This document shows, piece by piece, positions 29,101 through 64,000 of a stretch of DNA of 64,000 nt; position 1 is the first letter of the stretch, and each line of letters opens with the position of its first letter. Below the pieces are notes generated by a model. It had not been told where the DNA came from and made no database searches. It saw nothing but the letters and a program-made list of their open reading frames with translations. The position numbers were made by a program, and so were the translations under genes. Source of the stretch: Macrostomum lignano (Eukaryota); contig NIVC01002769.1 of NCBI GenBank assembly GCA_002269645.1, forward strand, positions 78,071 to 142,070, in the 5' to 3' direction.

Positions 29101-29980
29101 GAGCATCAATGAGCAATTTAGCTACGAGATGGCGGCCTTGCTGAGCTGCAATGTAAAGAGGCGACTCGCCGGTGTCTCGACGAAGGCTGACGTCGGCTTG
29201 CGCTTTGATGAGTGAGTCCACTACAAGATGGTGACCGTTACGGGATGCAATGTAGAGAGGTGACTCGCCATTGTCTTGTTGAAGGTTGACGTCGGCTTGT
29301 GCTTCAATAAGCGAGTAGACCACCTTATTACGACCAAAGCGAGATGCAATGAAAAGAGGTGAAGAACCAGTTCTGCGTTGAAGATTGACATCGGCACCTG
29401 CTTTGATGAGCGAATTGACCACGTCGAGATGACCGTACTGTGATGCGATGTAGATAGGTGCTTCACCAGGCATTCGCTGAAGATTGACGTCGGCCATTTC
29501 CTTGATGAGCAAATCGACTACGATATGATGACCGTTGCAGGATGCAATGTACAGAGGTGAGGCACCAGTTCTTCGTTGAAGATTGACGTTAGCTTCTGCT
29601 TGAAGGAGCAGTTGAACCACCCGGTAGCAACCAAATTTTGATCCGATGTAGAGAGGCGTCTCACCGTCGTTGTTTTGTAGATCGACGTCAGCTCCAGCTT
29701 TGATCAGCGTCCGAACCGCCAGATGTTGGCCGTGCTCTGAAGCGAGGTGAAGTGCAGAGGATCCATCGCAGTTTCTCTGGTCGATATTCAAGTTCTCCTG
29801 AGCAAGTCTTAGCAAGATTTTGTCCCTCCCTAAGCAGCTCGCAAGCATAACTAGTGTGATCTCGGATTCATTCCAAGTGTAAAAGGTGTCAATATTGTGT
29901 CCACAAGATATGTAATTCTCAAGGGCTTGAATTTCGTTGGCTTCAATTGCGGAAATGATTGCAGCATTTTTGGGCTCCAT
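26189..29980 (-). CDS. Ankyrin-repeat cGAS-like receptor (cGLR / Mab21-family nucleotidyltransferase), 977 aa; exons 29980-28857, 28228-27879, 27648-26189
   Basis: Exon 1 has about 9 ankyrin repeats ([24 protein letters not shown]). Exon 2 has NTase LVGSFSEG...ESDIDAM. Exon 3 has PAVDIVEA plus Mab21 C-lobe [35 protein letters not shown]. Donor AG|GTATGT and acceptor TTCAG|A (phase 2), donor G|GTGAGA and acceptor TTGCAG|CA (phase 1) give a stop-free 2934-nt CDS. Confidence 0.88.
28791..28820 (+). repeat. (GTTAT)6 microsatellite in cGLR intron 1
   Basis: Six exact copies. Confidence 0.9.
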
Positions 29981-30539: not shown

Positions 30540-32021
30540 TCATCTGGCACCATTTCTGACCTAAACCGGTTAACAGTAGCCCAACTGCGAGTGGCCCTAA
30601 GAGACAATGGCCTACCGGTTTCGGGAAACAAGCAAGAGCTTGTTGAGCGGCTTCAAGCTGCTCCACCACAGCCAGGCGACGCCGAAGTCCCAGACTATGC
30701 AGAAGGGGACGAAGCAGATACTGCGATAAATCAGCTGCTGAACGGGGAAAAATCGGAGAATATTGACGCCACGGTCGCCACGAACATTGCCCAAGAGAGC
30801 CGACTTGATAGCGAAATTCAGCAAGCTAGGTCGCGGATCGAGCTGCTAAAACTGAAGAAGCGAGAGGCGCAACTCCGGCAGGAAATCGGTCTGCATGCCG
30901 CCGCCACAGCTGAAGAGGTCGACCCGATTTCGGCACTTTTTGGCTCGCTTTCAGCGAAGGCGCGGCCGGCTCGACGCCCTCTGCTCATCCCGAACTTCGT
31001 GGATGGTAGACGGGATCAGATGACAGGGCTGACGCATGATCGCGACCGGGGCGCGGCGAAGAGCGGTGCGTCCAGCCTCGACAGCATCAGCACTGGGCAA
31101 TGGATCGCTGCTAACGCCAGAATAATGCTGCAGCTGCTTGAGTCCAACCAGCTCGTCTCAAAAGGAAGCGATGGAAGCATCGATGTGCGGCGCTTGAAAG
31201 CTTACCTCAATTTCAACATACATATCGGCTAGCTCATGGAAGCAGACTACGATTGGAATGTCGTCCTACGATACGATCAGGACATGCGTCTGTTACAGCA
31301 CGAGCGGCAAAGAGACTGGGACAGCCCAGACCTCCATATCTTAATCAAGCACATGACTGCGCCTAAGAACCTGCGAAAGACAGGCAGCAAAAAGTCTTCC
31401 AGATGAAGCCAAGCAACATCATGAGGCCAGACGATTTGCGGCCTCTTCAACAGCAACCGTGACTGCCAGAAGCAGCCTTACAACTTCGCACATGTCTGCC
31501 GCATCTGTGAGGCTCCGCACCCGGCCCATCAGCACCAGCACAACAATGGTTCGGGTCCAAAAAACTGATTGACCTCCGCCTCGCCTGCTGCCTTGCCTGC
31601 TCCGTCTTTAACTTCGTCACCCAACTCGCCTACAGCTTCATTCTTATCCATCTCGCCTCATCCGTCATCGGCTACTGCCGCGCCTGGTGGTGCCATTGCT
31701 GCCTCCAGATCGTCTAACCCGCCAACCCCGCCGCCAGCCCAGCTGCCAGCTCAGCCGCCAGCCCAGTCACCGGTCTCGACCTGGTCGCTTTCGCCATCAG
31801 CTTCGGAGCCTGTTCTAGCCAACGATCCGGATGCGGAGTTTTTCCGTACTGGCCTGCGCAATGGATTCCTCATCGTCAACAAGCCAGCTCAATCGGCCTC
31901 CGAATTCAGCATCTACGAATCCGCTCTTTGTGAGGACACCTACCAGCTGGTTGAGTCTCAGATCAGAGAGGAACTTGAGACTGGCCGCTATGTGTGCGCT
32001 TCAGAGTTGAGCTCTTTAAAC
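30540..32021 (+). mobile_element. Degenerate, 3'-truncated DIRS/Ngaro-like (tyrosine recombinase) retrotransposon: gag plus start of RT ORF
   Basis: N-terminal SAP motif LTVAQLRVALRDNGLPVSGNKQELVERL; gag core QWIAANARI...YDWNVVLRYDQDMR (past an in-frame TAG at 31230); Cys/His knuckle ICGLFN...FAHVCRICEAPHPAH; pol start DPDAEFFRTGLRNGF...VESQIREELETGR; cut at about 32021. Confidence 0.6.
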
Positions 32022-38387: not shown

Positions 38388-40287
38388 ACAAATTAAAACA
38401 AAGCAAGTTTAGAGAAAAAGCGAAAGTGACGCGTGAAGAAATAAAATATCATAAATAATTATTTTAGAGGCAGGTGCAGGAGGTGGTGTGCCAAGAGTTA
38501 ACCGAGGTCTTTGTTATTAGTCACTCCTGTTAAGTCCATTTAAGTCCGCGACCCCTTAGTTGTAATCCTGACTCCATTAACCCTCTACGAAAAATGAAGC
38601 TAGTCCAGTCAATGGGATTAATTAGGAAGTTGCTTGCATTTTAATCATTTTCAATACCCAAAGAATCAGATTCCAATTCTATGCATTGAGTCTCGCGGAA
38701 CCACGAATGTTTTTATTTAAATAGCGTTTAAATTCAAGTTAAAGATGAATCAGTAACCGAATTTAGACAATCCAGTGAAATGTCGGTGTCTTCAGTGTCA
38801 TCAAAACAACCAAATAAAACTTCGAGCAGGAGCTCGGGTCAGACTTGATCCGCTCAGCTCATCCTGCTGTATGAATCGAAACTCTGAAATTTTTCAGTCG
38901 AAGTTGCAATTGGGAAATCTGGAATTAATTCTGAAAATGATTTGGATATGTATCTAAATCCTTGATTAGCTAATGAGGCCGTATGTCAAGTTCAGGATAA
39001 ATACTGGGTATTCAATCACTGGAGATATGGCCGACTTACGCTTATTGATTGCTTCTCCTGCTGCCTCTGCCGCTGCATCTGCTGTAAAATGCTCATCACT
39101 TTCTCTAACTTTTTGTCCATTTTCTCGTTGTCCTCTCTCTGAGCAACGAGCACATCCTGCCGCAAGTCCTTGACCTGGTTCTCAACGTGCGCCTTGAGCA
39201 CATCGATGTCTCCTTTGTTCCGCTCCACAGGCCACTGCAGCCGGGGCCGGTGGTCTCGCAGCTGCTCAGCCTGGTAGATCAGGAAGCGCTTGAAGTCCTT
39301 GGGGTAGCCGCTGAAGTCTTCTTTGTGCTGCCACCACGGCTGGAACGGAAAAGTGTCTTATCTGATGTCACTGTATATTGAAAAAACGAACAAAAAGTGT
39401 CTGAAAAATGATTTTGGAATTGAAAGTAACGAAGCACTCCGTCCTGATCAGTTAAGCATGAAAAATTTGTCAGCCTAAAGCATAATATGACATAAAATTA
39501 GAACGCTGCTCGGTAAAAGCTGCTTACCTCAGAATCTTCATCACCAGCAACTGGGAAATATTCAGCGGAGCAAGGCTGGCACCGACAAGCGTAGCACCTT
39601 TGCAGAAGTTTCCAGGCGTAGTGTGGGAACGACAGCGGTGGCGGAACTGGACTGACCTCCGCGAACTCCCGCAGCAGATTGAACAGATTCTTGCGCCAGA
39701 GAGCCTCCGCCCTGCTCGCCAACTCCGTCACGGTGCGGCTGAACAGCGCGATCAGCAGATTCCACATCACTATGGTGACCAGAAGGAGATACACGAACAC
39801 CAGAATTCCGTTGTAAGCCTTATTTCCAGCTTCATCCGCACAGGACTCTCCAGTCGCGAGGCTGCTGGAGTTGCACGACTCGAACTGCGCGCTCTCCACC
39901 ATTCCGAAGGCCAGAGACACGGGCACCGTGAAAATCTTTGTCAGAACCTGAGCATCTCTTGAGTCTGAAAAGGCCGGAAACAGCAGGTTGAAGAAGAAGA
40001 TGCCGAATGAGTACACCAGCACCAGCAAGACCAGCATGAATGGCACCAGGTCGCTGAACAGCAAGCTCTTTAGCATACATGCGCAACTGCTGGCCGACCT
40101 GGCCGATCCGGCCACCGTAAATTGTGGCTGACCAGGGGTAAGTCGCAAAATTGAGTCAACCAAAAACAGAAAAACACAAGAACCAAGAAAGGCAAGAGGA
40201 AAGCGAAAGAAAGAGCAGTTCAGGGAAAATGGTGAAGCAAAAGAAAAACAATTCGCAAAAGAAGCAAACTAAGTTGTAAAAATAATC

Positions 40288-40568
40288 AGGTAAGTCGCAA
40301 AAAGGATCAGGTAAGTCGCAACAGGAATCAGGTAAGTCGCAAAAGGGTTAGGTAAGTCGCAAAAAGGATTAGGTAAGTCCCAAAAAGGATTAGGTAAGTC
40401 CCAAAAAGGATTAGGTAAGTCGCAAAAGGATCAGCTAAGTCGCAAAAGGGTTAGGTAAGTCGCAAAAGGGTTAGATAAGTCGCAAAAGGATTAAGTAAGT
40501 CGCAAAAAGGATTAGGTAAGTCGCAAAAAGAAGCAACTAAGTCGCAATAAGAGGAAAGTAAGTCACAA
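40288..40568 (+). repeat. Subterminal tandem repeat, 20-21 bp unit AGGTAAGTCGCAAAAAGGATT, about 14 copies
   Basis: Direct inspection; the TAAGTCGCA motif also recurs at about 40139, 41981 and 42005. Confidence 0.92.
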
Positions 40569-40789
40569 TCAGAGGCAATCAGGGGGTAGTAGGTGCAAGT
40601 GTGGCAGGAGAGCAAAAACAGAATAGAAGCCTTCAACCACAGACAAGATCTTTGAAATCAGAAGCCCGCGTCATTTCTTAAACTCTGGAGCAGGGGTCGG
40701 CAAACTCCGGCTCGCGAAGCCCCTCTATCTGGCCCTCGCCCCTCGGGTTCTTTGAAACTTCCTAACTACGAGTAGCAAGGTTGGTGTCT

Positions 40790-41465
40790 CTTCAACTCTC
40801 ATCTCTCTCTTCTTCTCTACCTTGCCTCCCCTCTTCTCTCTCTCCCCCTTTTCCCTCTTCTCTCTCCTCTCATTTTTACTCTCCTCTCTTCTCCCCCTTT
40901 CTCTCTACCCTTTCTCCTCAATGCCCTCTTCTCTCCTCTTATCTTCAGAAAAAATATGTGCATATTTTCTTACTTCAAAGTAGAGGGAATAGAAGATTAG
41001 AGATAAGCAAACAGAGGAGAGGCGAGCGATGCGATGGGAGAAAAGATAGAAGAGGAGAGAAAAGCTGAGGGAGGAAAAAGAGATGAGAGAGAAGAGGAGA
41101 TGAGAGAAAAGAGGAAAGAAAAGATGATGGATAAGATCAGAAGAGAGGAAAGAGGAAAGAGGAGAGAGTAGATGAGAGACGAGAGGATAAAGAGGAGATG
41201 AGAGGAGAGTGAAGAGAGGAGAGATGAGAGAGTAGAAAAGAGAGGAGAGATAATGAGAGAGTAGAGTGGAGAGAGACGAGAGGGAAGATAAGATGAGAGA
41301 GTAGAGTGGAATGGAGAGAGACGAGAGGAGAGATAAGAATGTAGAGAGGAGACAGAAGAGATAGGAGAGGAGAGGAAAGAGAGGAGAGAGGAGAGGAAAG
41401 AGAGAAGGGATAAGGGATGAGAGAGAAAAGAAAAAGAGGATGAGAAGATTGAGGAATGGAGAGAA
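40790..41465. repeat. Low-complexity polypyrimidine tract followed by a long polypurine tract
   Basis: CT-rich at 40790-40945, GA-rich at about 40975-41465. Confidence 0.9.
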
Positions 41466-43053
41466 TTTGCAAAGGCCTCAAATCTTAGTTTAACATGCAT
41501 TACTCCCATCTTTGCCTTTTTCCTAACTGTTAACAAGTTTTTGTTTGAGCATGACTTCAAATTTAGAATCTATGCAAAAATAGTTCCGGGAATTAGAATT
41601 CAGTGGTTTAAAAATCTGTGGGTTTTCACAGCTTGTATCTCTACTGGATTCGTATTCTGCATCTGATGAGCCATCTGAATCAGGGCTCTCATCTTCCATG
41701 CCAAATCGTCTAGCAAATCGTTCTTGAGCTATAGGTCACACTGTATTCACTTCACTTACTTCTGGACATTCATGAATCATGACTTTTGTAGTATGCTCAC
41801 TACACTGTACTGACAATTTACTAATTGCTTCATGCCGCCACTAGATGACACTGATTAGCTGTTATAAAAACGCGGAATCTGCACGCAGCACTAATTAGCT
41901 GGCGAGGCATTTACCTTAAAAAATATGGTCATAGTTACTCCTGCCGTTTACCTAAAGTTTTTGCTTGGCTCTTTCATAGGTAAGTCGCATTTTTTATCGA
42001 AAACTAAGTCGCACGGCCAGCGTAATTTCAGAAGTTGCGCATGTATGCTCTTTAGCATATTGATTTTCGGCCCGGTGACCTTGAAGTAGCTGAGCAGGGC
42101 CACGGAGCGGAAGCCGAGAAACAGGAATGAGACGCTGAGCACAACCTGGCAGCTTCGCAGGAGGCTGGAGTCGCTCAGGTGGCCGAGCAGCTTCAGGACC
42201 AGACCTGCCCACATCAGCAGCAGCCCAGCCATGTCGAAGTAGTTGAACAGGTCAATGAAGTAGCGTGGAATTCTTATGTCAAGCCCGAGTATTGTCAAGT
42301 CCTTCAGAGAAATACTGTTAATAAGTTGATTGACTTCCTGCAGCGTGAACGACAGTGCGTACAACAGCAGGATGATGTCTGGCACTGGAGATTGTTGAGT
42401 CCGACTGAAGTCCGTCACGTACCAGGCAAAGTAGAGCAGGAAGACCAGGAAGGAGATGGAGTAGATGATGAATCGCTGTTGAATTGTGACTTTTGCTGCA
42501 ATGTTGCAGGTGCAACAGCGTTGAGGTCTGCTCCACGACAACGGTGGATGCCTCTTCCAATGCTACTCCACCAAATTGCTGATGCACTTAGTTGCGAACA
42601 AGTCGTCGCAGTCAAGAGTCTCTACAAGGTCCATGACTGATTTGAACTTTTGAGACGCTGTATCATTTTCGGAAGAAAGTTTCCGTGCTTCGTTGCTCCT
42701 TTTCTGTTGAGGCTTGTCATTGTCCGCATGGGAGCTTTCCCGTCGCAGGAGTGATGAATGAGGTGCCAAAAACCTCGGCCCAGCATTGCGCTGGTCTTCC
42801 GAGAGACGAAACGAACCAGTCAGGTAGGTGAACAGAAGTTCTCGCGTGTCTTCATCAGCATTTGCGTAAAGGTGGTCCAGAATGTTGATAATGGTGTTAT
42901 AAGCTTGAAGTTGCACTCTCTGAAGAATCTCACTCTTATCGACTTTCGTCTTTAGGTAAGTGAGCAGTCTCAGGGTCTGAGGAATGATGTCGAATTGAGG
43001 CAACAACATGAGGTCAGTGAGAAGCTTTGGCTTCTCGAGCAGCACAGCGTATT

Positions 43054-44852
43054 CACGGACTACTTAAGTAGAAGGACGCGACACGCGCAAAACGTGCAAA
43101 TTTTATTGGAGGCTGAATATTCAATTTTATGTAGCTCGACTCCAGAAACTCGCCGAAGTGTAGTTTTTTCACATGATACAAATAATTTAGTCCTTGTTCA
43201 TGTAACATATGTAATGAATGATTAAAACGATGCAGAAACCTTAGAAATTAGTTTCAAGCGACGAAAACTAACTTTTTCTGGTGAGTTTCGAGTCTCGACG
43301 TGCGGCATTTGTAGCACAAAATATAGCTCTTCATTTTGATATAGCACTTATTTTAAGTGATTCTTTTAGCTGTTCATTGTTACTGTGAAGCGGACCTTTT
43401 TGACCTGGTCATAAGAAAACCTATCGCAAGATGTACAGACATATAACAGATACCACTGATTCTGCGCCAATCGTATCGGATAAATAGAGTCAAGACGAAC
43501 TAAGACGAAAGATTTTAAGAACACGAAGAACACGAACAGCAGTACAGTGACAGTTGTAAAACCTCAGCCTTGGACACTTCATTGTCACAACAGTTCTGGA
43601 GCATCCTCCTTAAGATGTGTGTACACTTGTTTGTGAGGAAGCCAACCACTCGAGTATTTGTTCCATGTATACAAAATAGCAACCTCCATGGCCTTGCCTA
43701 TAGATAGAGAATTCTTTCTCCAGACCATCCAATTGAAAGTCACCTGAAAAGGATAAGGAAAATAGCTGCATAGCATGAATACTTAATGATACACAACCTA
43801 AATAAAACAAGTTAATACTTATAATATTATTCATACCTAGCATGACATTTAAATTGGAAGTGAGATAAATTGAATTTATTAATTAAGTGAGTTAAATTGA
43901 AAGTGGATATATTGTGACATCTGAATACAATACTTCCATGGGTGACCATGTAACTGCTGCCCCCCCCCCTTAACCAGAGATAGTGTGTCGCCATTGAATT
44001 TTTATATATTAACAGAAAAACTGATTAAAACAATTTAGGCCCTATATGCCTCTGAAAGAATATAAGATGAGTAAGTTCTTAAAAACATAAATATCTATAA
44101 GTTCTATAGCAAAAATATTAATGCAGTATATATTTTTGAAGCATGGGGCTATAATTATAAATAGACTGACATGAGTCATAAAAAATATATAGGTTTACCA
44201 GTAAAATGATTAATAAGAATAGAATACTTAAAGTTAAATACTTATATTAATAGGCCTATATTTTATAAATTATCTTAGTCTAAGCCTAGCTAAGTCAATA
44301 ATAGATAGAAGAGATAGCTTATAGGTTTACCAAGAATACCAACTAATGCCAATGGTAATGATATACAATAGTTAGCTAGGCCCTATACCTAGATAATGTA
44401 GATATAGGCCTATGCCTAATAGTTTAATAATGAAATACTGCAGGCCCCTATGCTGTAATAACAAATAGCTACATTATATTTTATCATCGCCAGGGTAGTA
44501 GCAGTGGGCCCTGACTAGCAAATGTTGATAAATTTCCAAAAAGTATACTTGCATAGATGGCCTATGCCTCCTATGGTCTACATACAAATTCTAATTTAAA
44601 TTAGGTTAGGCTAGCTATGTATAAACGATACATTTCTAAACAGTACTAAGCTAGACGGAAATTATGTATTGATAAAAAATGGGACAAAAACAAAAAACAC
44701 TCTAAAAACTAAAAAGATCTGCATTCTATGATAAAAACATTTCAATGCCCTGCTAAATCTATAGTATACGCTAAGGGAAATTCAGCCTCCAAAAAAAATT
44801 ACACGAATCGTGCGTGTTGCGTCCTATATAAACGACAATTAAGTAGTCCGTG
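43054..44852. mobile_element. Non-autonomous DNA transposon, 1799 bp, 14-bp TIR, 8-bp TSD (hAT- or P-like)
   Basis: TIR CACGGACTACTTAA / TTAAGTAGTCCGTG; TSD AGCGTATT at 43046-43053 and 44853-44860; empty site in the paralogue at about 60609-60617; AT-rich non-coding interior. Confidence 0.9.
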
Positions 44853-47800
44853 AGCGTATTCCATCAGCACAAGAGCTTTCGAATTTCCGTCTTGTACTGA
44901 ATAATATTGCTCCAAAGTAGTCATAATCGGAGACTTAGCATTCGGCTGCTTTTTGCTGATCTGTGCTAAAATATGCTTAGAAAACTGGTCATCAATCTCA
45001 TCATTGACAAGGCCCAAACTGATCAAGCTGCGCAGCATTTCAGTTGAGTCAAGCTCGAAGGCCTTGAACAGCATCTGTACTTCAGGAGACTCTTCTGTCT
45101 TCGACATGCGTTCAACATCGTGCTCAGTCTTTTTATCATTTTTCTTTCTGCCTTCTTGAGAGTTTCTTGGTGCAGAAGTTCTTCTATCAATCTGAATGCT
45201 GGCCTTAAGTGAGGAGTCAGTAAATTTAGTCAGGTGATTCCGTGCGCTCTGCTTGTCAGGAAGTTTCAGTGCCTTCTTTGCTACATCCACTAACGTGAGC
45301 AGTTCCCTGAGGCTGAAGGAATTCTCTGTCGGAAATTTATTGATATCATTTGCTACCTCAATGAGAACTTCGAGTTTCCCCTTGTTGCAAGCGAAATCGA
45401 CGCATGTCTGCCCAGCTGCCGTCTCATCCTGCAGTTTTGCACCATTCTGAAGAAGGTATTCGATGTTCTCTTTGTGACCAGACTTGCAAGCAAAGTGGAG
45501 ACACGTTGCTCCTTTAAGAGGACCGTCGGAGACACGAACAGCTAAAAGTTTTTCAGAACTGAGACCACAGAGATTTCCTAATTCTTGTGCAATTATTTGA
45601 AGGTCGTATGTTGAACAAAAAACGTGAGCAACGTGCAGACCCTCCGAGTTTCTTTGAAGGTTTTTGAAAGCTACTCGTATTGACGACGATCTCCTCAGAG
45701 CATTTAAAACTTCTTTTAAGTGAATTTCATTTGCTTCTGAAGAGAACAGACAGTTGTGATTCCTCTTGTTCTCGGCTGCAGGATCAACACGCAGTTCGAT
45801 GCGATCAGTGAGCATTTCCAGTTCATCTGATGTCCGAAATTCATTCAGTTTTCCGAACAGTGCATGCAGCATAGTATTGCCATCTAAGTCAGTTTCACGC
45901 ATATCTACCAGATCTTCTTTGTCCACCTTTTTGAGCTGCTCAAGCAGCCATCGTAAAACATCCGGAAACGTGCTGTTAAAGACGGAAACGAAAAACTGGG
46001 TTTGCTGCAAATCATTGGCGACTGTCAAGCAGTCTCTCCATGAAAGCTTCTGAATCAGAACAGAGATGGTCGAAGAGATGGTCGACACGTTTTGGCAACA
46101 AAAAGCGTAATGAATGGGAGTGTTTCCATCATCATCTCTGGAAAGGAACTGCTGCGTATTTTTAACTTCGGAAGCGAGCCACGTTAGCGGTGAAGGATCC
46201 CAACTGTTTTCAGCTGCTACATGCAAAATTGTTCGGTTTCTGGGGCCTTTGGCCAAAATGCACTTTTGCAAATCGAGTTCTGTTGCCATTGCCTGAAGAG
46301 TGTCTAACTTTTGGCATTTAAAAGCAACGTGCACGGCACTGTCTCCATCGTCATCTGGATCGAAGAATCGTTTCTTGTCCCCAACTTCGGAAACAAGCCA
46401 GAGAAGCACTGACGGATCCTCACTGTTTTCAGCTGCGGCGTGCAAAATTGTTTGTTTTCTATGGCTTTTCACAGCAAAGCAGTTTTGTAAACCGAGTTCC
46501 TCTGCCAATTTCTGAAGAGTGTTGAATTCTCGGCATTTAAAAGCAACATACACGGCACTCTCTCCATCGTCATCTGGATCGAAGAATCGTTTCTTGTCCC
46601 CAACTTCGGAAACAAGCCAGAGAAGCACTGACGGATCCTCACTGTTTTCAGCTGCGGCGTGCAAAATTGTTTGTTTTCTATGGCTTTTCACAGCAACGCA
46701 GTTTTGTAAACCGAGTTCCTCTGCCAATTTCTTAAGAGTGTCCAATTTTTGGCAATTGAAAGCAACATACACGGCGCTCTTCTCGTCCTCATCTGGATCG
46801 AAGAATCGCTGCTTGTCTTCCACTTCTGAAAGAAGCCCCAGCAGCACTGATGGATCCTCATGTTCTTGAGCTGCAGAGTGCAAAATTGTTCTCTTTTTGG
46901 GGCCTGTAACAGAAATAAACTTCTGCAAACCGAGTTTCGTTGCTAATTTATTAAGAGTCTCCAAGTCTTGGCATTTAAAAGCAACATCCACGGCACTTTT
47001 CCCATTCTCGTTTGGATCAAAGAATCGCTGCTTGTCTTCAATTTCAGAAACAAGCCACAGTAGCACTGACGGATCTTCACTGTTTTTTGCTGCGGCGTGC
47101 AAAATTGTTTGTTTTCTATGGCTTTTCACAGCAACGCAGTTTTGTAAACCGAGTTCCTCTGCCAATTTCTGAAGAGTGTCGAATTCTTGGCATTTAAAAG
47201 CAACATACACGGCACTTTTCCCATCCTCGTCTGGATCGAAGAATCGCTGCTTGTCTTCCACTTCTGAAAGAAGCCACAGCAGCACTGATGGATCCTCATG
47301 TTCTTGAGCTGCAGAGTGCAAAATTGTTCTCTTTTTGGGGCCTGAAACAGAAATAAACTTCTGCAAACCGAGTTTTGTTGCCAATGTCCGAAGGGTCTCC
47401 AAGTGTTGGTCTCTGAGAGCAACATACACGGCACTCTCTCCATCATCGTCTGGATCGAAGAATCGCTGCTTGTCTTTAACTTCGGAAGCGAGCCAAAGAA
47501 GCACTGACGGATTGTATATGTTGTGAGCTGCTTCATGCAAAAGTGTTCGGTTTTTGGGGCCTTTAATGCTAAGGCATTTTTTAAAATCCAGGTTTGAAAC
47601 CAACGTTTGAAGAGTGTCCAATTTATGATGTTTGAAAGCAACGTACACCGCACTCTCTCCATCATTGTCCAGATCGAAAAATCGCTGCTTGTCTTCAAGT
47701 GCACAAACAAGCCAAAGAAATGCCGACGGATTCTCGCTGTTTTTAGCTGCGGAGTGCAAAATCGTTCGATTTCTCGAGCCTTTGGCGGAAAGGCAGTTTT

Positions 47801-50800
47801 GCAAATCGAGTTCCTTTGCTAATGTCTGAAATGTCTTCAAGTCTTGATTTTCAAATGCAGCATACACGACAGTTTCTCCATCCTCGTCTGGATTGAAGAA
47901 TCGCTGCTTGTCTTCCACTTCGGAAACGAGCCACAAAAGCACTGACGGATTTTCACTGTTTTCAGCTGCCGCATGCAAAATTGTCCGACTTCTGGGACCT
48001 TTGGCGGAACCGCAGCTTTGCAAACCGAGCTCTGTTGTCAATGCCTGAAGAGTGTCCAACTCTTGGTAATTGAAAGCAACATGCACGACACTCTTTCCAT
48101 CATTGTATTGAATGAAGAACTGCCATTCGCCTTTTATTGTGGAAGCAAGCAAGCGAAGCAAATCTGGGTTTTTGCTGTTATGAGCAGAAATGTGCAAAGG
48201 TGTTTTCATATCAGCATTCAGCTTTTTGACCAGCTGTTGTCCACATTTGTCCCAAATAATTTGCAGTGCCTGGACTGTCGAATCTGTCTGCTTGCAGCAG
48301 CAGGCAAAGTGAAGCATGTTGTTGAATTTATCGCTTCTCAGTCTGAGGCACAGATCAGGAAGCCTGTCTGTCAAGACTTTTAACAGCTGGATATCGGACG
48401 TGACAGCTGCCAAAAACAGCAGTGCCTTCGCTTGTACTCGTATATCATTCTGATCCTCAATGCACGTTTTTAGTGTCGTTGCTATTCTGTTCTGCTCCTC
48501 AATGTCGTCATTCTTGCAAGCTTGGCGCAACTCCTTGTGCCATTCTCTGCACTTACTGTCTGCGTCGCTCCAGATGGATTTGAAATCGAATTCATGCAGT
48601 CCAAACTGGCTTAAGTCGAAGTCCTCATTATCCATTAGGAGCGTCTGGCACAGCTGTGAATTCTCCTGGCAGTAAAACAGCAATCGGTTTTTTAGAATTA
48701 GGCCAACAAAATAATGCGTGAGCAGGAAATAACTTACTTCAAATATACAATGTAAAATCCAGTAAAAGTAGTGCTGAGGCGTTTCTATGTTCCCCTGTAG
48801 GTACAAAAAGACTTACGGACATTTCCTCTCAGGCATTTCCCTTTTTGGCATCACCCTCTCGACAGTAGTATGGTGTAGTAGAGAGAGATGGATATTGGAG
48901 TTGCAGTGGTCGTGAGTTCAACGCACGACTTATAGCGTAGAGAAATGAACTTTAGCTACTACAAGCTGAGATTTTCATAAATACTTCACTTTATAACACG
49001 GTTCATTGTCAAAATAAAAATTTTGTAAATTTCGTTCAAATAAAATGTACAATAACCTTACAGGGTATACATTAAATCAGCAAGTAGAGCTGCAAACCGG
49101 ATCCCATTCTTGTCAAAGTGGACGTCAACAAAGCACCTAAAGGATTCCTGCAGTATTGTGTTCGTTTACGTTTCAACTACTCGTAATTTATCCTAACAGT
49201 AGATTTTCAAAATTGATACAGTCTATGTGCTATTGGTAAAGTAAGCTAAGTATTTTAAAACAAAGTTCCAATGCTTTACTACCATTCACAAGAAAACATC
49301 ACCATGCATATAAAGTTTTAAGGACCATATCTAATATTAATACTTTTCTCTAGGGACTAACTGTGCACTTTATAGCGCAAAGCCTTTGGCGACATCGTTC
49401 CAACAACCAGCACAGAGGCAATTCTGCACATTCTGCTGACTCAAGCTCGCCAAGACTGTACGCAACTGGGCACTCGTACACACGCTCACACAGGGTGTAC
49501 AGGCTGGCCTTGAATTTCTTAGCGCCAAGGGGCTGTACACTTTCTGCGCCTTGTGCATTTTGTGCTCCAGAATCAGAGTTGTCTACCGCTGAGCTGCTCT
49601 ACCGGCCCCTAACCACAGGTGAAGCTCCTGACCACACTGTCTTGCCATAAATTGCCGAAAAACGCCATGTAATCCCATGCAAGTTAAGTCGGTTGATTGA
49701 AGCATCTCAAACTTTTGACAGGCATCTATAAGCACATTGTGAGGATGTAAATCTTATGAGGATCCGGAATGTTTAGATGATCTACTAGAGGGCAAGCCTG
49801 ATGCGGCCTTCTGAACTGCTGCGCGAGCGGCGACACTTCGACTGGCTGGCCACGTCATGTTGTCGAAAGCTGCGGCGGGGAGCCGCTGCATTGACGTGCT
49901 GCTGCTTCCAGCGGCAGGGACCGCGTAGGCAAGGCCAAGGGCGAACGGCTCGCTACATTGACAGATTCATAAAGGAGGACGCTAGCGCCCATGACCACGC
50001 GGGTGGGTGTGAATTTTTGATGGACCCTGACCCATCTGACTCCTCCCCCCTTCTGGCCACTTCGTGTGATCGGTGGGATGGGTTCTTAGTTGTTATTGTT
50101 GAACACATGATTGTTTGAACTGAGTACTACGGCTTATAGCCTACGAGTACAAAAAGGCTACAAGGCTTCTTGATGACCTTTGCGACTTTCACAACAGGGG
50201 CTGCTGCGACTTTCATAGCCGAAAGGGATGTGAAGCTCTCACAGTCCACTGGCACGGGAGCTTATGCCCCGTGCTTCGAACTGATGATAAAACGTTTCTC
50301 ATACCTCAAACTCGCTACTCTTAGTAGCAGATCGCTTCCCAGTCACTCGGTCTCATTCTCTCGACCAGGCTACAAAAGTGCTTTTCACCAAATTCTTACC
50401 TCTGCGAGGCAAAGAGTCAAATTTACGAGTAGGAGTAGGCAGAGAGAGAACAATCGAGCATAAACAAAAGCTTTGTTGACTAAAGTGAGAATTAAGTTTT
50501 AACAGAAAGTGGAATTATGAACAGTCGCAGTCGCAGCAAAATCTGAGGCTGACTCTCGTCTTCTTCCTCGTCTATCTCTTTCTACATTAATTTAAACACT
50601 ACTGCTAGACCTAGAGTAATGGATCAATGCTAATGAGAATGAAAATCAACAAGATCGGATATCGTACATGTACTACGTCTCTTGTACATGTATGTAAATA
50701 GAAACCCCCATCAGCGAGACAGCTGATTCAAGCCCTCAGTTACACCCGGGCAGTTTCAGCCCAGTTTCATGGACTCAACAGCATATTGATAAGCGTACAG

Positions 50801-52377
50801 CTGGCTTCATTCTCGAATATATCATCTTTAAATTGCATTGCTTGCTTGCTTGAAAAAGAGGTTTTTCATTAATGGAAATCTTTGTCGAAGTTTAATTATC
50901 AGAGCCAAGATCGCTAGAAAAATTACGTTGAGCCCCTCACTACTCCATGCACTACTCAGCAATGTGGCCGACTTCTCCTGGAAACCAATGCTGTCTGCCA
51001 GGAAATTAGAAGCAAGGTCACACTCTGTCACTAAAGAAACCGCAGCGATCTTGACAAGCACAAGTCAAACCGCCGAGCAAATTTCCAGCTTGGTGATCCA
51101 CATAAGCTTTGAAGAAAATTAATGCGCAACTCGCCATTCACGCACCGCAGTCTGCGCAAACTGGCGCTAAGGCGAGAAGACTATTGGCACCAACAAGCCG
51201 TCATGAGAGGCGGCGGTGGGTGGCAGATGCTATTTTTCTATTGGATAAGAGAAGGAAAAGGTTTCTGATACTGGTAATTCCTTTCACGACTTGATGAATT
51301 GTCCGTGTTATCAGAATATTTAAGCTCTAATTCAATATTTTGCTCAACGTGAACTCAGGTCTTTCTTTTTTGCCTTCTCGAATCCAAAATAATTTTCTGC
51401 TAAAACTTCCTATAGTCTGCTTAGTCTCATTTGAATTACTTTAAATCTTGTGTGAAATTATTAACTCTTCTTGAAATGAATTGCAAAGAATTTGTTCAAA
51501 CACCACCTTGTCGTCAATTGGTTTCAGGACAATTTCCCGAATTGTTTGCTCCATTTTTACTATAGAAAATTTTACAAGTGCTTATTCGATTACTATAGAA
51601 AGGACATTGACGTCCTCACTCAGGCCACAAGGTCACCTGCGAAATTATATGATGGTATATGAAATTCTCCAGGATATTTTCCCGTGGAGAAAATAGGGGG
51701 AACCCTCGAGATTGCACTTTGGATGTCTATTGAATTGCCAAAGAAAATATTTTTTCTAAAAGCCATTTTTACTGTGATATTTTGGTAAAATTATTGTTCC
51801 AGCTAATCTCCATTTCCTTCTCCGGAATGTAATTCATTCTCATGTCTATATATTCTGCTTGGGAAATTCAGACAATAACATTGACAAAACGAGCACCGCT
51901 TACTACGGCATATTATCAATCCAAAGATGGTAAACGTGTATTTTCAATCCAAAGTTGTTTTTAGCATACTACTTACATAAGTAGCATGGTTGTCTATAGC
52001 TTCTATTGTTTTCTTGAGAAACCAGCAATGAACGTCAATCGTTTCTAGTCTTTTCATATTGGCGAATAATGTTTGATTAAACAGACCTCCGATCTTCCTA
52101 CTGCTTCCTTTGGCTTTCCTAACTGCCTCGTAAGAACGACGCCTAAGCTCTTTTTCAGACGGCATGGTTTGGTGTTAGAATAGAAAATTGTTCCCTTGTG
52201 GAAAATGATAGGAAGCTTCTTATTATATAAAATTTGGAGGTCTCCCATTAGATGCCAGATTTTCTGCCAAAGTTCCGCCAAAAATTCCGCCAAAAATTCC
52301 GTCAAAAATTTTGCCAAAAAATGCTGGTTTTGGCGGCCTATTGGGATTAAAGAGATAAGGCCTCTTTCTGAGAATAA

Positions 52378-52752
52378 TAGAGAAGCTGCAGGGAAGTTCC
52401 CCTTTTTCGAGAACAATAGACTCTTGAGAGTACTCAGTACTGAGAGGAGAAAGGAATGGTTGTAATTAGCGACTAGATGGGTAAGAGATTTTGAGTACTG
52501 TTGAATCCACGTATAGGCAACGTAGTTCCCCTTTTCTGAGTACAATAGAAACTGCGGGGAAGTTCCCCTTTTCCGAGAACAATATAGACTCTTGAGAGTA
52601 CTCAGTACTGAGAGGAGAAAGGAATGGTTGTAATTAGCGACTAGATGGGTAAGAGATTTTGAGTACTGTTGAATTCACGTATAGGCAACGTAGTTCCCCT
52701 TTTCTGAGTACAATAGAAACTGCGGGGAAGTTCCTCTTTTCCGAGAACAATG
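52378..52752 (+). repeat. Tandem duplication of a 166-168 bp unit, about 2.2 copies
   Basis: GGAAGTTCC(C/T)CTTTT anchors at about 52392, 52558 and 52726 with near-identical intervening sequence. Confidence 0.9.
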
Positions 52753-53547
52753 GAGACTGTATGTGGGCTTTCAGTAACAATGGAAGGTATGAAGCTCTGA
52801 CTTAGTCAGCCTCCTCTTGAGAACACTCGTAATTACTATTATTCTCTTCTGAATCTACACTTGTTGCGTATTCACTTATAGTATAAAATTTACGTTTGAA
52901 TGAGTTTTACAAAATCCTGGAAACGTTTTACTCATTTCGATTACTTGAATTAAATGAATTTTACAAAATCATTTTTTTTCTTTTTTCCTATCACTTTTTA
53001 AAAAGGGCATTGCCTTCACCACCACCCTCAGAAAAAATTTAAACGCCAATCATTAAAAATTACAGTTTAAAAAAGAATAATTTGTAGTAGTTGTAGGTAC
53101 TCGTATTATATTGGATGGATATCAAGTGAAGAATGAACGAATGAAAGAACGAGCGAAGCGGGTGAATGATGAACACCTCGACGAAGTCGAGTGTACGGCC
53201 ACCCAATATAATACCTACAACTACTCTCGCCTTCTGAAGCTTCTGAAACTGAAGCTTTGAAGAAACAGCTCACAAAACTACACAAAAAGGAATAAAACGA
53301 GGCAAGGAAGGAACAATAGGAATCATTGAGCAAGGAAAAAACAAAAGAGAAACTCGCATTCACTCACCGCACAGTTTGCGCAAATAGGCGCTAAGGAGAG
53401 AAGATACCAAAAAATTGCACCAAAAAACCAGTTGAGCTTGATGTGAGTAGCCTCCAATTGTTGGCTTATATCTGAGCAAACTAAACTGAGTAACCAACTA
53501 AAACAAGGTCTCATTTAAATAGCGGCAGTTTTTACGGTGGGAGTGCT

Positions 53548-58591: not shown

Positions 58592-61500
58592 TTACTGCTG
58601 TCTCTGCTGTTGCATCTGCTGTAAAATGCTCATCACATTGGTCATTTGTTGCTGCAGTTTGTCCAACCTTTCATCCATTTTCTCGTTGTCTTCTCTCTGA
58701 GTAGCGAGCAAGTCCTTGACCTGGTTCTCAACGTGCGCCTTGAGCACATCGATGTCGCCTTTGTTGCGCTCCACAGGCCACTGCAGCCGGGGCCGGTGTT
58801 CTCGCAGCTGCTCAGACTGGTAGATGAGGAAGCGCTTGAAGTCCTTGGGGTAGCCGCTGAAGTCCTCGGTGTGCTGCCACCACGGCTAAAGCGGAAGAGT
58901 GTCTTATGTAAATGGAACAACAACGTCAATTAAATAATAAATATAACAAACACTAAGTGTCTAGAAATTTGAAACAAAATAACGAATCATTCCGCTCTGA
59001 TGAGTTTGGCAAAATGCCTACATGAAAATAGTCTGACATATAATTGCATTTTTGGTCGGCAAAAGCTGCTCACCTTCGAACTTTCAGCACCATCAGCTGG
59101 GCTGACTTCACCGGATCGTGGCTGGCACCGACAAGCGTGGCACCTTTGCAGAAGTTTCCAGGCGTAGTGCGGGAACGACAGCGGTGGCGGAACTGGACTG
59201 ACCTCCGCGAACTCCTGCAGCAGCTCGAATAGATTCCTGCGCCACAGAACCTCCGCCCTGCTGGCCAACTCCGTCACGGTGCGGCTGAACAGCGCGATCA
59301 GCAGGTTCCACATCACGATGTTCACCAGTAGGAGGTACACAAACACCAGAATTCCGTTGTAAGCCTTATTTCCAGCTTCATCCGCACAGGACTCTCCAGT
59401 CGCGAGGCTGCTGGAGCTGCACGACTCGAACTGCGCGCTCTCCACCATTCCGAAGGCCAGCGACACGGGCACCGTGAAAATCTTTGTCAGAGCCTGAGCA
59501 TCTCTTGAGTCTGAGAAGGCCGGAAACAGCAGGTTGAAGAAGAAGATGCCGAATGAGTACACCAGCACCAGCAAGACCAGCATGAATGGCACCAGGTCGC
59601 TGAACAGCAAGCTCTTTAGCATATTGATTTTCGGCCCGGTGACCTTGAAGTAGCTGAGCAGGGCCACGGAGCGGAAGCCGAGAAACAGGAATGAGACGCT
59701 GAGCACAACCTGGCAGCTTCGCAGGAGGCTGGGGTCGCTCAAGTGGCCGAGCAGCTTCAGGACCAGACCTGCCCACATCAGCAGCAGTCCAGCCATGTCA
59801 AAGTAGTTGAACAGGTCAATGAAGTAGCGTGGAATTCTCATGTCACGCCCGAGTATTGTCAAGTCCTTCAGAGAAATACTGTTAATAAAGTCATTCACTT
59901 CCTGCAGCGTGAAGGACAGTGCGTACAACAGCAGGATGATGTCTGGCACTGGAGATTGTTGAGTCCGACTGAAGTCCGTCACGTACCAGGCAAAGTAGAG
60001 CAGGAAGACCAGGAAGGAGATGGAGTAGATGATGAATCGCTGTTGAATTGTGACTTTTGCTGCAATGTTGCAGGTGCAACAGCGTTGAGGTCTGCTCCAG
60101 GACAACGGTGGATGCCTCTTCCAATGCTGCTCCACCAAATTGCTGATGCACTCAGTTGCGAACAAGTCGTCGCAGTCCAGAGTCTCTACAAGGTCCATGA
60201 CTGATTTGAACTTTTGAGACGCTGTATCATTTTCGGAAGAAAGTTTCCGTGCTTCGTTGCTCCTTTTCTGTTGAGGCTTGTCATTGTCCGCATGGGAGCT
60301 TTCCCGTCGCAGGAGTGATGAATGAGGTGCCAAAAACCTCGGCCCAGCATTGCGCTGGTCTTCCGAAACACGAAACGAACCAGTCAGGTAGGTGAACAGA
60401 AGTTCTCGCGTGTCTTCATCAGCATTTGCGTAAAGGTGGTCCAGAATGTTGATAATGGTGTTATAAGCTTGAAGTTGCACTCTCTGAAGAATCTCACTCT
60501 TATCGACTTTCGTCTTTAGGTAAGTGAGCAGTCTCAGGGTCTGAGGAATGATGTCGAATTGAGGCAACAACATGAGGTCAGTGAGAAGCTTTGGCTTCTC
60601 GAGCAGCACAGCGTATTCCATCAGCACAAGAGCTTTCGAATTTCCGTCTTGTACTGAAAAATATTGCAACAAAGTAGTCATAATCGGAGACTTAGCATTC
60701 GGCTGCTTTTTGCTGATCTGTGCCAAAATATGCTTAGAAAACTGGTCATAAATCTCATCATTGACAAGGCCCAAACCGATCAGGCTGCGCAGCATTTCAG
60801 TTGAGTCAAGCTCGAAGGCCCTGAACAGCATCTGTACTTCAGGAGACTCTTCTGTCTTCGACATGCGTTCAACATCGTGCTCAGTCTTTTTATCATTTTT
60901 CTTTCTGCCTTCTTGTGCATCTTTCGGTGTAGAAGTTCTATCCTTCTGAATGCTGGCCTTAAGCGAGGAGTCATTAAATTTAGTCAGGTGATTCCGTGCG
61001 CTCTGCTTGTCAGGAAGTTTCAGTGCCTTTTTTGCTACATCCACTAACGTGAGCAGTTCCCTGAGGCTGAAGGACTTCTCTGTCGGAAATTTATTGATAT
61101 CATTTGCTACCTCAATGAGAACTTCGAGTTTCCCCTTGTTGTAAGCGAAATCGACGCATGTCTGCCCAGCTGCCGTCTCATCCTGCAGTTTCGCACCATT
61201 CTGAAGAAGGTATTCGATGTTCTCTTTGTGACCAGATTCGCAAGCAAAGTGAAGACACGTTGCTCCTTTTAGAGGACCGTCGGAGACACGAACAGCTAAA
61301 ATTTTTTCGGAACTGAGATCACAGAGATTTCCTAATTCTTGAACAATTTCTTTTAGGTCGAATCTTGAACAAAAAGCATGAACTACGTGCAGACCCTCCG
61401 AGTTTCGTTGAAGGTTTTTCAAAATTGCTGTAACCGGAGATTTCTTAAGAGCATTCAAAACTTTGGCTAAATGAAATTCATACGCTTCTGAAGCAAACAG

Positions 61501-64000
61501 ACAGTTTTGTTTCGATTCGTTTTCGGCTGCAGGATCAACACCCCGATCGACAAGCAATTTTACGCGATCGATGAGCATTTCCAGTTCATCTGAAGTCCAA
61601 AAGTAATTCAAATTTCTGAACAGTGCATGCAACATATTGTTGCCTTTCAAGTCAGTTTCATGCATATCTACCAGATCTTCTTGGCCCACCATTTTGACCT
61701 GCTCAAGCAGCCATCGGAAAACATCCGGAAATGTGCAGTTCATGACGGAATGGTAGAACTGGGTTTGCTGCAAATCATTGGCGACAGTCAAGCAGTCTCT
61801 CCATGAAAGTTTCTCAATCAGAACAGAGATTGTTGACAAATTTTGATAACAAAAAGCGTAATGAAGGACAGTGCTTTCATCATCATCTCTGGAGAGGAGC
61901 TGCTGTGTATTTTTGACTTCGGAAGCGAGCCACATTAGCAGTGAAGGATCCCAGCTGTTTTCAGCTGCTACGTGCAAAATTGTTCGGTTTCTGGGGCCCT
62001 CAGCGGAAACGCACTTTTGCAAACCGAGTTCATTTGCCAATGCCTGAAGAGTGTCAAATTCTTGGCATTTAAAAGCAACATACACGGCGCTTTTTCCATC
62101 GTTTGTATCAAAGAATCGCTGCTTGTCTTCGATTTCAGAAACAAGCCACAGCAGCACTGACGGATTTTCACTGTTTTTTGCTGCGGCGTGCAAAATTGTC
62201 CGACATTTGGAACCCTTAGAAGAAACACATTTTTGCAAAGTGAGCTCCGCGGCCAATGCCTGTAGAGTGTCTATTTCTTGGTAATTGAAAGCAACATACA
62301 AGGCACTTTTTCCATCCTTGTCAGGGTCGAAGAATCGCTGCTTGTCTTCTACTTCAGAAGCGAGCCACAGTAGCACTGACGGATTATATCTGTTTTCAGC
62401 TGCGACATGCAAAATTGAGCGATTCCAGGCGCTTTTCAAAGAAAAGCATTTTTTCAAATCGAGCTTAGTTGCCAGCGTACGGTTAGTGTCCAAGTTTTGA
62501 CAATTGAAAGCAACGTGCACGGCACTCTCTCCATCTTCGTCTGGATCGAAGAATTGTCTCTTATTTTTAACTTCAGAAGCGACCCACAATAGCACTGATG
62601 GATTAGATCCATTTTCAGCTGCGGCGTGCAAAATCGTCCGACATCTGGGACCCTTGGATAAAATGCACTTTTGTAGACTGAGCTTCGTTACCAATGCCTG
62701 CAGAGTGCCCGAGTTTTGGTATCTGAAAGCAACGTGCACGGGACACTCTCCATCTTCGTCTGGATCGAATAATCGCTGCTTGTCTTCTATTTCGGAAACA
62801 AGCCACAGAAGCACTGACGGATCCTCACTGTTCTCAGCTGCGGCGTGCAAAATTGTGCGATTTCTTGGTTTTTAAAGGAAACACACTTACGCAAATCGAG
62901 TTCTATAGCCAGTTCCTGAAGAGCGTCCGAGTTTTGGCAACTGAAAGCAACATACACGGCACTCTCTCCATCTTCGTCTGGATCGAAGAATTGCTGCTTG
63001 CCTTCAACTTCGGAAACGAGCCACAGCACTGACGGATCAGATCCATTTTCAGATGCGGCATGCAAGATTGTCCGACGCATGGGATCCTTGGCGGAAAGGC
63101 ATTTTTTCAAGCCAAGCTCCGTTGCCAATTCCTGAAGAGTGTCCGAGTTTTGGCATCTGAAAGCAACGTGAATGGCGCTCTCTCTATCCTCGTCTGGATC
63201 GAAGAATCGCTGCTTGTCTTCCACTTCGGAAACGAGCCACAGAAGCACTGACGGATCCTCACTGTTTTCAGCTGCGGCGTGCAAAATTGTGCGATTTCTA
63301 GGGCCTTTCACAGAAATACATTTTTTCAAGCCCAGTTCCTTTGCCAACGTCTGAAGAGTGTCCAAGTTTAAGCAGCTGAAAGCAACGTGTATGGCGCTCT
63401 CTCTATCCTCGTCTGGATCGAAGAATCGAATGCTTGTCTTCCACTTCAGAAACGAGCCACAGAAGCACTGACGGGATGGATCTGTTTTCAGCTGCAGCAT
63501 GCGAAATTGTTCTCCTTCTAGGACCCTTGGCGAAACGCAGCTTTGCAAGCCGAGCTCCGTTGTCAATGCCTGAAGAGTGTCCAACTCTTGGTAATTGAAA
63601 GCAACATACACGGCACTTTTTCCATCCTCGTCTGGATCGAAGAATCGCTGCTTGTCTCAACTTTAGCAACAAGCCACAGAAGCACTGACGGATCCTCACT
63701 GATCATTGCCGTAATGTGTAAGATCTGTCTCCCTGGCATTTGACAGATAGGCAGTTTTTTAAACTGAGCTCCGTTGCCAATGTCTGAAGATCTCCAAATC
63801 TTGATATTCGAAAGCAACATGCACGGCACTCTTTCCATCATTGTCTTTAATGAAGAACTGCTGTTTGTCTTGACTGTAGAAGCAAGCCAACGAAGCAAAT
63901 CTGGTTTTGGCTGTTTTGAGCAGATATGTGCAAGGGTGTTCTCATTCAGCATTCGGCTCTTTGATCAGCTGTTGTCCACATTTGTCCCAAATAATTTGCA
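58592..64000 (-). CDS. Ankyrin-array TRPM-like cation channel, copy 2 (5' end beyond window; exons >64000-59074 and 58885-58592; multiple frameshifts above 62850)
   Basis: 73-aa double-ankyrin units, pre-S1 DLFATECISNLVEQHW, S1-S6 with YFIDLFNYFD, TGPKINML...SDL, pore PVSLAFGMV, S6/TRP box NIVMWNLLIALFS...LWRRNLFELLQEFAEVSPVPPP, and C-terminal coiled coil. Intron AAG|GTGAGC..TTTAG|CCG is phase 0. Frame open from 62850 to the end. Confidence 0.85.

Follow-up and report, generated by a model that had tools for sequence, protein, structure and literature searches.

Does a single gene of the flatworm Macrostomum lignano join a pore of the TRPM type to an ankyrin array of the length known from NompC, and from which branch of the TRP channels would such a gene descend? 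The question is raised by a stretch of 64,000 nucleotides (hereafter the window; positions 78,071 to 142,070 of contig NIVC01002769.1, assembly GCA_002269645.1), which carries on its minus strand two copies of the same channel gene: copy 1, complete upstream, at about 39083..48635 (-), and copy 2, which extends from 58592 past the window end and has its N-terminus outside the window. An earlier note on this DNA, made from its letters alone, had described a TRPM-type core behind about 26-28 ankyrin repeats and taken the whole for a chimeric TRP architecture. The analysis presented here establishes that the ankyrin array and the TRPM-type pore lie in one gene, whose family probably descends, as a member or as a sister group, from the known ankyrin-bearing TRPM-like branch of flatworms. 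The architecture as such is already published for parasitic flatworms; a NompC-length array made from tandem 73-amino-acid (aa) double repeats, and the expansion of the family in Macrostomum, look new.

One gene from ankyrin repeats to pore

The raw DNA of copy 2 contains one open reading frame (ORF; 58987..62850 (-), 1287 aa) that spans 16 ankyrin repeats, a helical linker of 348 aa, the segments S1-S6 and the TRP helix. The coding portion of this ORF (59074..62850) ends at a GT donor (59073), followed by a phase-0 intron of 188 nt (58886..59073 (-), GTGAGC...TTTAG, with GT..AG borders) and a short last exon (58592..58885 (-), stop codon 58592..58594). The spliced junction agrees with the protein models P0001 and P0003, and the last exon is 100% identical to residues 1552-1648 of P0003, which represents the same gene in another assembly. 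This exon encodes PWWQHTEDFSGYP..., starting with PWWQ, followed by a heptad-rich C-terminal helix, a putative tetramerisation coiled coil for which Pfam gave no TRPM_tetra match, and ends in a Q-rich tail. In the intact paralogue Mlig023275 (P0005, 1967 aa), residues 1-1646 are encoded by one exon of locus L002, running from the start codon through the array, the linker and S1-S6 to the PPP motif, and the sole downstream intron examined lies immediately ahead of the WWQ motif and matches the intron of copy 2 in position. Since array, linker and pore share one ORF in raw DNA, neither splicing nor a gene model is required to connect them. The junction of array and TRPM-type core proposed in the earlier note is thus borne out at the DNA level by copy 2 and by the 1646-aa exon of P0005, and so is its remark that most of the gene forms one giant exon, given the ORF of copy 2 and its single short last exon.

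The core, comprising S1-S6, pore helix, FGM filter, TRP helix and PPP motif, occupies 59164..60054 (-), as delimited by PDB sequence matches, helices of an AlphaFold2 (AF2) model and Foldseek. Every TRPM hallmark motif listed earlier could be located in copy 2, namely the S3 motif YFIDLFNYFD (59797..59826), GPKINML (59617..59637), the pore helix and filter PVSLAFG (59449..59469), the S6 motif NLLIALF (59287..59307) and the TRP helix LWRRNLFELLQEFAEVSPVPPP (59182..59247), all on the minus strand. Using a 345-aa segment covering S1-S6 and the TRP helix as a phmmer query against all PDB sequences, the best 60 matches were all TRPM channels, from TRPM3 (E 2.5e-15) to rank 60 (E 4.9e-8), and hence structures of TRPC, TRPN, TRPA and TRPV score worse. 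The AF2 model of proximal repeats, linker and core, built from a 21-sequence alignment, reached a mean predicted local distance difference test score (pLDDT) of 73.6, with 80-93 over the proximal repeats. When its linker-to-TRP part was compared with the PDB by Foldseek, the top 45 places were taken by TRPM4, TRPM3, TRPM2, TRPM8 and TRPM5 (TMq 0.41-0.48), and structures of TRPA, TRPC and TRPV were absent both from the best 60 matches by sequence and from the best 50 by fold. By sequence the S1-S6/TRP segment is thus nearer to TRPM than to the other solved TRP subfamilies, and the linker-to-TRP model is nearest to TRPM by predicted fold; grouping with TRPN, TRPA or TRPC was not observed. Polar residues conserved in the family (QExxD in S2 and NxxD in S3) would fall at the sites where Ca2+ is bound by TRPM2, TRPM4, TRPM5 and TRPM8.

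Upstream of the core, Pfam recognises in the window protein ankyrin families in addition to Ion_trans, and there is no match to LSDAT_euk/SLOG, corresponding to melastatin homology regions (MHR) 1 and 2, even when parts of the protein were searched at E<=10. A SLOG-seeded jackhmmer search found this domain in 33 other retrieved TRPMs and in 0 members of the window gene's family. The linker (60055..61098 (-)), which includes the pre-S1 motif DLFATECISNLVEQHW, gave on its own no Pfam match (TRPM2-like, PF25508, included) and no jackhmmer match to MHR3/4. Using hhalign, its family profile could be aligned with the pre-S1 region of ankyrin-bearing flatworm TRPM-like proteins (probability 96%, E 3.8e-9, 125 columns), and this region in turn with MHR3/4 of canonical TRPMs (E 4e-27), while the direct comparison of the linker with canonical MHR3/4 is weak (E 0.022 over 37 columns). 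These profile alignments suggest that the linker is a diverged MHR3/4 remnant. The view that ankyrin repeats stand in place of melastatin homology regions therefore holds for SLOG/MHR1-2, whose absence was confirmed by both kinds of search, and probably fails for MHR3/4.

The array is composed of a 73-aa double ankyrin repeat, seen in the DNA as a 219-nt period. Copy 1 has 28 repeats, of which 20 (ten double units) are strictly periodic, six are proximal and diverged, and two are distal; this total agrees with the earlier hand count of about 26-28 in this copy. For copy 2 the same figure does not apply to the intact ORF, which holds five double units and six diverged proximal repeats (16 in frame with the channel, 61099..62850 (-), identified by ORF, Pfam and profile); about ten more repeats lie in the distal array (62851..64000 (-)), which contains nine frame shifts and is cut by the window end. 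The repeats were counted by profile matching and Pfam, and a single-sequence AlphaFold prediction of the 1097-aa copy 1 array (pLDDT 47) was not used. Other paralogues have 850-1000 residues ahead of the linker. The array (44853..48635 in copy 1, 61099..64000 in copy 2) is polymorphic in length, P0003 being about 196 aa longer and the allelic contig NIVC01001982.1 (L001, 8904..9734) about 727 bp shorter. Its length is due to recent tandem amplification of the 73-aa double repeat. A further ORF of the window (28817..29980 (-), 387 aa) encodes highly canonical ankyrin repeats (Ank_2, E 6e-93) of a sequence unrelated to the 73-aa channel units.

Condition of copies 1 and 2

Copy 1 is a pseudogene, disrupted by two transposon insertions and a nonsense codon; neither this nor the frame shifts in the distal array of copy 2 had been noticed in the earlier note. 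Its array and the first part of the linker form one ORF from the start codon (MDNEDFDL...; 44853..48635 (-), supported by ORF, Pfam and profile; enclosing ORF 44799..48806). The linker is then interrupted by a 1.8-kb insertion (43054..44852 (-)) with the terminal inverted repeat (TIR) CACGGACTACTTAA and an 8-bp target duplication AATACGCT. The following segment from the linker to S4-S5 (42045..43053 (-)) has an in-frame TAG (42563..42565) at a position where copy 2 reads CAG (Gln). A second insertion of 2.0 kb (40077..42044 (-); TIR ACATGCGCAACT, target duplication of about 12 bp, ATGCTAAAGAGC) separates the S4-S5 linker from S5, and the remainder of the gene (39083..40076 (-)) comprises S5 to the TRP helix (40076..39528), an intron and the last exon (about 39349..39083). 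The two transposons are different TIR DNA elements, and in the second a stretch of about 100 bp is repeated internally (40278..40568). An interpretation of these interruptions as introns was ruled out by the TIRs, the target-site duplications, the lack of GT..AG junctions and their absence from copy 2 and the allelic contig. As both insertions are missing from these two, they must be recent or polymorphic. The allelic contig (L001, also from GCA_002269645.1), collinear with about 24 kb of the window at 91-98% identity, has lesions of its own: a TCG>TAG change in S2 (L001 12122..12124; window about 42300), where the NCBI model P0002 ends, and, within the array, a frame-breaking deletion junction. 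Because the lesions differ between the window allele and L001, the copy 1 locus has been disabled independently at least twice.

Can copy 2, then, encode a working channel, or are both copies decaying? Exact 6-mer frame tracking against P0003 located nine frame changes in 62851..64000; this approach was used because tblastn of P0003 gave merged, out-of-register high-scoring segment pairs within the repeats. Eight of the nine are single-base losses within about 500 bp, which are absent from P0003, whose residues continue seamlessly over the eight sites. Such a cluster looks like poor consensus quality, as in a poorly polished long-read stretch. Two observations weigh against an active copy 2, which may be non-functional. 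The ninth shift, in an A5 run near 62870, is bypassed in the P0003 gene model too and may be real, and the first ATG within the intact ORF is codon 306. Set against this are its 1259 open codons with an intact last exon, and a ratio of nonsynonymous to synonymous divergence (dN/dS) of 0.31 between the two copies over linker and core (dS = 0.065), which is a signature of constraint on the channel part at the sequence level. The frame shifts in the distal array are thus either partly or wholly an assembly artefact, or a sign that copy 2 is decaying as well.

An alternative arising from these data is that neither window copy yields a working channel, with the Mlig010093-type locus being a decaying pseudogene pair and other paralogues being the functional ones. 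The two transposons and TAG of copy 1, the separate nonsense codon and array deletion of its allele, and the nine shifts of copy 2, including the one near 62870 that the P0003 model avoids, all fit such a decay; what speaks for copy 2 is its long open frame and last exon, the dN/dS value, and the clustering of eight shifts as single-base losses not found in the other assembly, which is typical of poor long-read polishing. On balance, decay of both copies is a real possibility, somewhat doubtful in view of the state of copy 2.

Synonymous divergence between the copies was found to be unequal, with 0.065 over linker and core (59164..61098 and its copy 1 counterpart) and 0.30 over the proximal ankyrin repeats (61099..61900 and counterpart), which suggests that the channel part underwent gene conversion or that the genes are of mosaic origin. 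In the spacer that separates copy 1 from copy 2 lies a 168-bp tandem repeat (52365..52758, 2.3 copies, 94% identity).

Descent of the family

The closest proteins to the window gene are M. lignano models (70-98% identity), and a word-indexed protein search with the window protein as query gave two matches, both from Macrostomum. More distant relatives were collected by an exhaustive HMMER scan of 1.84 billion representative sequences, sorted into a first tier (E<1e-30) and a second tier (E 1e-22 to 1e-12). Tier 1 consists of 30 clusters, whose fuller-length members match the window protein over linker and core together (33-53% identity) and carry ankyrin repeats over 850-1000 residues upstream. 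All tier 1 members looked up are from M. lignano but one, as models named ANK_REP_REGION or Ion_trans. The exception (P0006/P0155, MEE4247282.1) is a 1537-aa ORF on a 5.1-kb contig of a Kangiellaceae metagenome-assembled genome, with an ankyrin array plus core and 41% identity, and is most likely a marine-animal (eukaryotic) contamination of the bin.

Tier 2, consisting mostly of core-only matches, mixes canonical SLOG-bearing TRPMs with SLOG-less, ankyrin-bearing flatworm proteins from M. lignano, Schistocephalus solidus and Dicrocoelium dendriticum, which have 5-8 ankyrin repeats, an MHR3/4-type region and Ion_trans. This MHR3/4 region is matched by Pfam TRPM2-like in two M. lignano models, and by the jackhmmer profile only in two parasite proteins. 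The Opisthorchis viverrini protein P0028 was rejected as a distant family member, being a merged model with two MCLZ-like cores (residues 686-987 and 1365-1671); P0028 and P0171 each have two complete TRPM_MCLZ-like cores, which points to two tandem genes merged into one model.

Ankyrin-bearing proteins of this kind have been described before. TRPM_MCLZ (Smp_333650), the schistosome target of meclonazepam (PMC10788528, PMC11731825, PMC12861061), lacks the NH2-terminal MHR1/2 or SLOG domain, has ankyrin repeats and belongs to a clade termed 'TRPM-like' (PMC11731825, PMC12861061, PMC10788528); when expressed in HEK293 cells, it gives Ca2+ signals and currents (PMC10788528). Published residues of the Schistosoma mansoni protein (Sm.TRPM_MCLZ) include H946 in S4, which sets meclonazepam sensitivity and is His or Tyr, and R1120/T1121 (PMC12861061). 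The protein P0082 has a Tyr in S4, as expected for Plagiorchiida, and Arg-Thr past the TRP helix, both at an offset of +13 from these positions. An equal-length member of the Schistocephalus cluster (P0075) is annotated 'TRPM7', the earlier label of TRPM_MCLZ. By these residues and labels, P0082 and the P0075-cluster protein look like TRPM_MCLZ orthologues.

Neighbour-joining (NJ) trees were computed from 121 core domains and 279 columns; they are unrooted, without a TRPC, TRPN or TRPA outgroup, and include no sequence identified as TRPS. Tier 1 forms a clan at 100% bootstrap, and the split between tier 1 together with the ankyrin-bearing, SLOG-less flatworm proteins and the remaining sequences obtains 78-82% with Kimura, two gamma and Scoredist distances. 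Joined with the linker alignment described above, this grouping suggests that the window gene's family probably descends from the known ankyrin-bearing flatworm TRPM-like branch, either from within it or as its sister. The chimeric architecture proposed in the earlier note is a published one, that of TRPM_MCLZ, with whose clade the window family groups in these trees; the note is correct that ankyrin repeats are lacking in canonical TRPMs (PMC7306681), yet it misses this flatworm TRPM-like exception.

A number of points weigh against this descent. Sm.TRPM_MCLZ itself is outside the sequence set, and the clade was anchored by residue offsets and annotation history. The placement is a moderate one, given distance trees from 279 columns without the named outgroups, and two flatworm groups that both evolve fast may have been drawn together by long-branch attraction. 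Core-domain hidden Markov model (HMM) scores of the window family do not single out the ankyrin-bearing profile (135 bits, as compared to 129-142 bits for SLOG-bearing TRPM profiles of equal size), and the window protein scores worse with it (145 bits) than with SLOG-bearing profiles (158-176 bits).

The main rival to common descent draws on just these points. It holds that a SLOG-bearing TRPM of Macrostomum itself lost MHR1/2 and captured an array, in a convergent gain unrelated to the TRPM_MCLZ clade. The lack of preference in the core HMM scores, the support below 85% for the joint clan, obtained with distance methods only, and an array of recently amplified 73-aa units, where the other group has 5-8 canonical repeats, are all compatible with it. 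However, the linker fits the ankyrin-bearing group far better than canonical MHR3/4 (E 3.8e-9 versus 0.022), both groups occur in one phylum, and also within M. lignano, with the same domain order and without SLOG, and one loss with one gain is the more parsimonious course, which together make the independent gain unlikely. Less probable by far is that the gene is a divergent TRPN/NompC orthologue with a superficial TRPM resemblance of its core. Its 26-28 repeats do approach the 29 of NompC, the NOMPC structure (5vkq) is significant in Foldseek (rank 46, E 2.8e-11), and TRPN has been reported absent from schistosomes (PMC5196486), so that a replacement is conceivable; but NOMPC chains are missing from the 60 top-scoring PDB sequences, its TMq of 0.35 falls short of the 0.41-0.48 reached by TRPMs, the linker shows homology to regions of the MHR3/4 type, and recent tandem duplication accounts for the length of the array. 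Finally, the notion that a separate ankyrin-repeat gene and a channel gene were read as one through an annotation or assembly artefact, for which the mis-merged Opisthorchis models P0028 and P0171 in the same family offer a precedent, is already refuted by the raw sequence of copy 2 and L002, where the ORF runs across array, linker and pore without gene prediction, and its probability is negligible.

As regards novelty, a full-text literature search revealed no paper with a title or abstract on Macrostomum TRPM-like ankyrin channels; PMC5196486 mentions Macrostomum for a TRPV sequence only, and the ancestor of TRPM and TRPS has been described as ankyrin-free (PMC7306681).

The remainder of the window contains ORFs with BTB_2 (E 1.7e-25) and Ion_trans (E 1.4e-35) domains at 13749..15792 (-), which by domain content are a gene for a Kv-type voltage-gated potassium channel, and an ORF with a SAP domain (E 1.8e-7) at 30591..31232 (+). 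Between 9 and 27 kb, Pfam gave no match for several further ORFs, which are 200-470 aa long.

Proposed mechanism and comparison with known systems

On the reading of common descent, the locus would encode a subunit of a tetrameric TRP cation channel of a Macrostomum-expanded subfamily, within, or sister to, a flatworm TRPM-like clade where N-terminal ankyrin repeats would have replaced the melastatin SLOG domain (MHR1/2). The domain order read from the sequence is an ankyrin solenoid, the MHR3/4-like linker, S1-S4, the pore helix with the FGM filter, S6, the TRP helix and, past one intron, the C-terminal helix. By analogy with TRPM_MCLZ and canonical TRPMs, the protein may conduct cations non-selectively, with gating presumably exerted via the interface of S1-S4 and TRP helix, and the array may act as a cytoplasmic scaffold or as a compliant tether through which a partner is coupled to linker and TRP helix. 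Birth-and-death evolution of a receptor family for environmental sensing would fit the large set of paralogues, the tandem copies and the repeated pseudogenisation. Nothing in the analysis speaks for the immune channel that the earlier note also considered. A bolder idea is that the long-array subfamily of Macrostomum represents a convergent NompC-type tethered mechanosensor on a TRPM-like pore, which we regard as improbable. Tandem amplification of the 73-aa repeat would then have provided a solenoid of about one superhelical turn as a gating spring, and the fast variation in unit number would tune the spring length among paralogues and haplotypes. TRPN has been reported missing from the best-studied species of the phylum.

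An N-terminus that is free of ankyrin repeats and bears SLOG is taken as a mark of TRPM in TRP classification. TRPM_MCLZ, the one published exception to this mark, is a validated anthelmintic target, and a free-living, genetically tractable flatworm would have dozens of its relatives, with arrays three to four times longer. The ankyrin-bearing TRPM-like branch would accordingly exceed in age and diversity what is suggested by work on parasites. RNA interference and transgenesis work in M. lignano, which could serve as an experimental system for the role of the ankyrin module in this branch, and it would offer a natural series of array lengths in which the 'ankyrin spring' idea can be tested outside TRPN. 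At the same time, loci of the window type are unstable, with unit-number polymorphism, transposon hits and independent nonsense alleles, and single gene models of them should not be trusted.

Among known systems, the closest in architecture is TRPM_MCLZ of Schistosoma mansoni (UniProt A0A5K4FCC0) with its orthologues in flukes and tapeworms. Shared with the window family are ankyrin repeats instead of SLOG/MHR1-2, a retained linker, homologous by hhalign and probably of MHR3/4 type, the TRPM-type S1-S6, TRP helix and PPP motif, a gene with few exons and restriction to flatworms. The differences lie in the array, with about 8 repeats in the TRPM_MCLZ clade as compared to 26-28 in the window family; in the linker, still detectable as MHR3/4 by Pfam or jackhmmer in that clade, and by neither in the window family; and in the core, where the two match at E of about 1e-14 to 1e-19 with about 26-29% identity. 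At the S4 position governing meclonazepam sensitivity, the TRPM_MCLZ clade has His or Tyr and the window gene has Gly, in a hand alignment anchored on the conserved GP motif. A response of the window channel to meclonazepam is hence not expected from its sequence. Moreover, the expansion of the window family is seen in a free-living flatworm, and studies of TRPM_MCLZ concern parasites.

Canonical TRPMs (TRPM1-8, with structures of TRPM2, TRPM3, TRPM4, TRPM5, TRPM7 and TRPM8) provide the best sequence and fold matches to linker and core, and have in common with the window protein the S3 motif YxxDxxNxxD, GPK, the pore helix with its FG filter, NLLIA, the TRP helix, PPP and a C-terminal helical region. 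The window protein differs from them in lacking SLOG/MHR1-2 and a TRPM_tetra match and in having an ankyrin array. The sister family of TRPM, TRPS (soromelastatin, ced-11-like), has a TRPM-like core as in the window gene, but retains SLOG and has no detectable ankyrin repeats (PMC7306681). With TRPN/NompC, represented by Drosophila NOMPC, the window protein shares a six-helix core and a TRP helix, preceded by a helical linker and a long N-terminal ankyrin solenoid that completes about one superhelical turn (29 repeats versus 26-28). The tether or spring function of that array may offer an analogy for the window array, set in the latter case on a core and linker that are not of the TRPN type.

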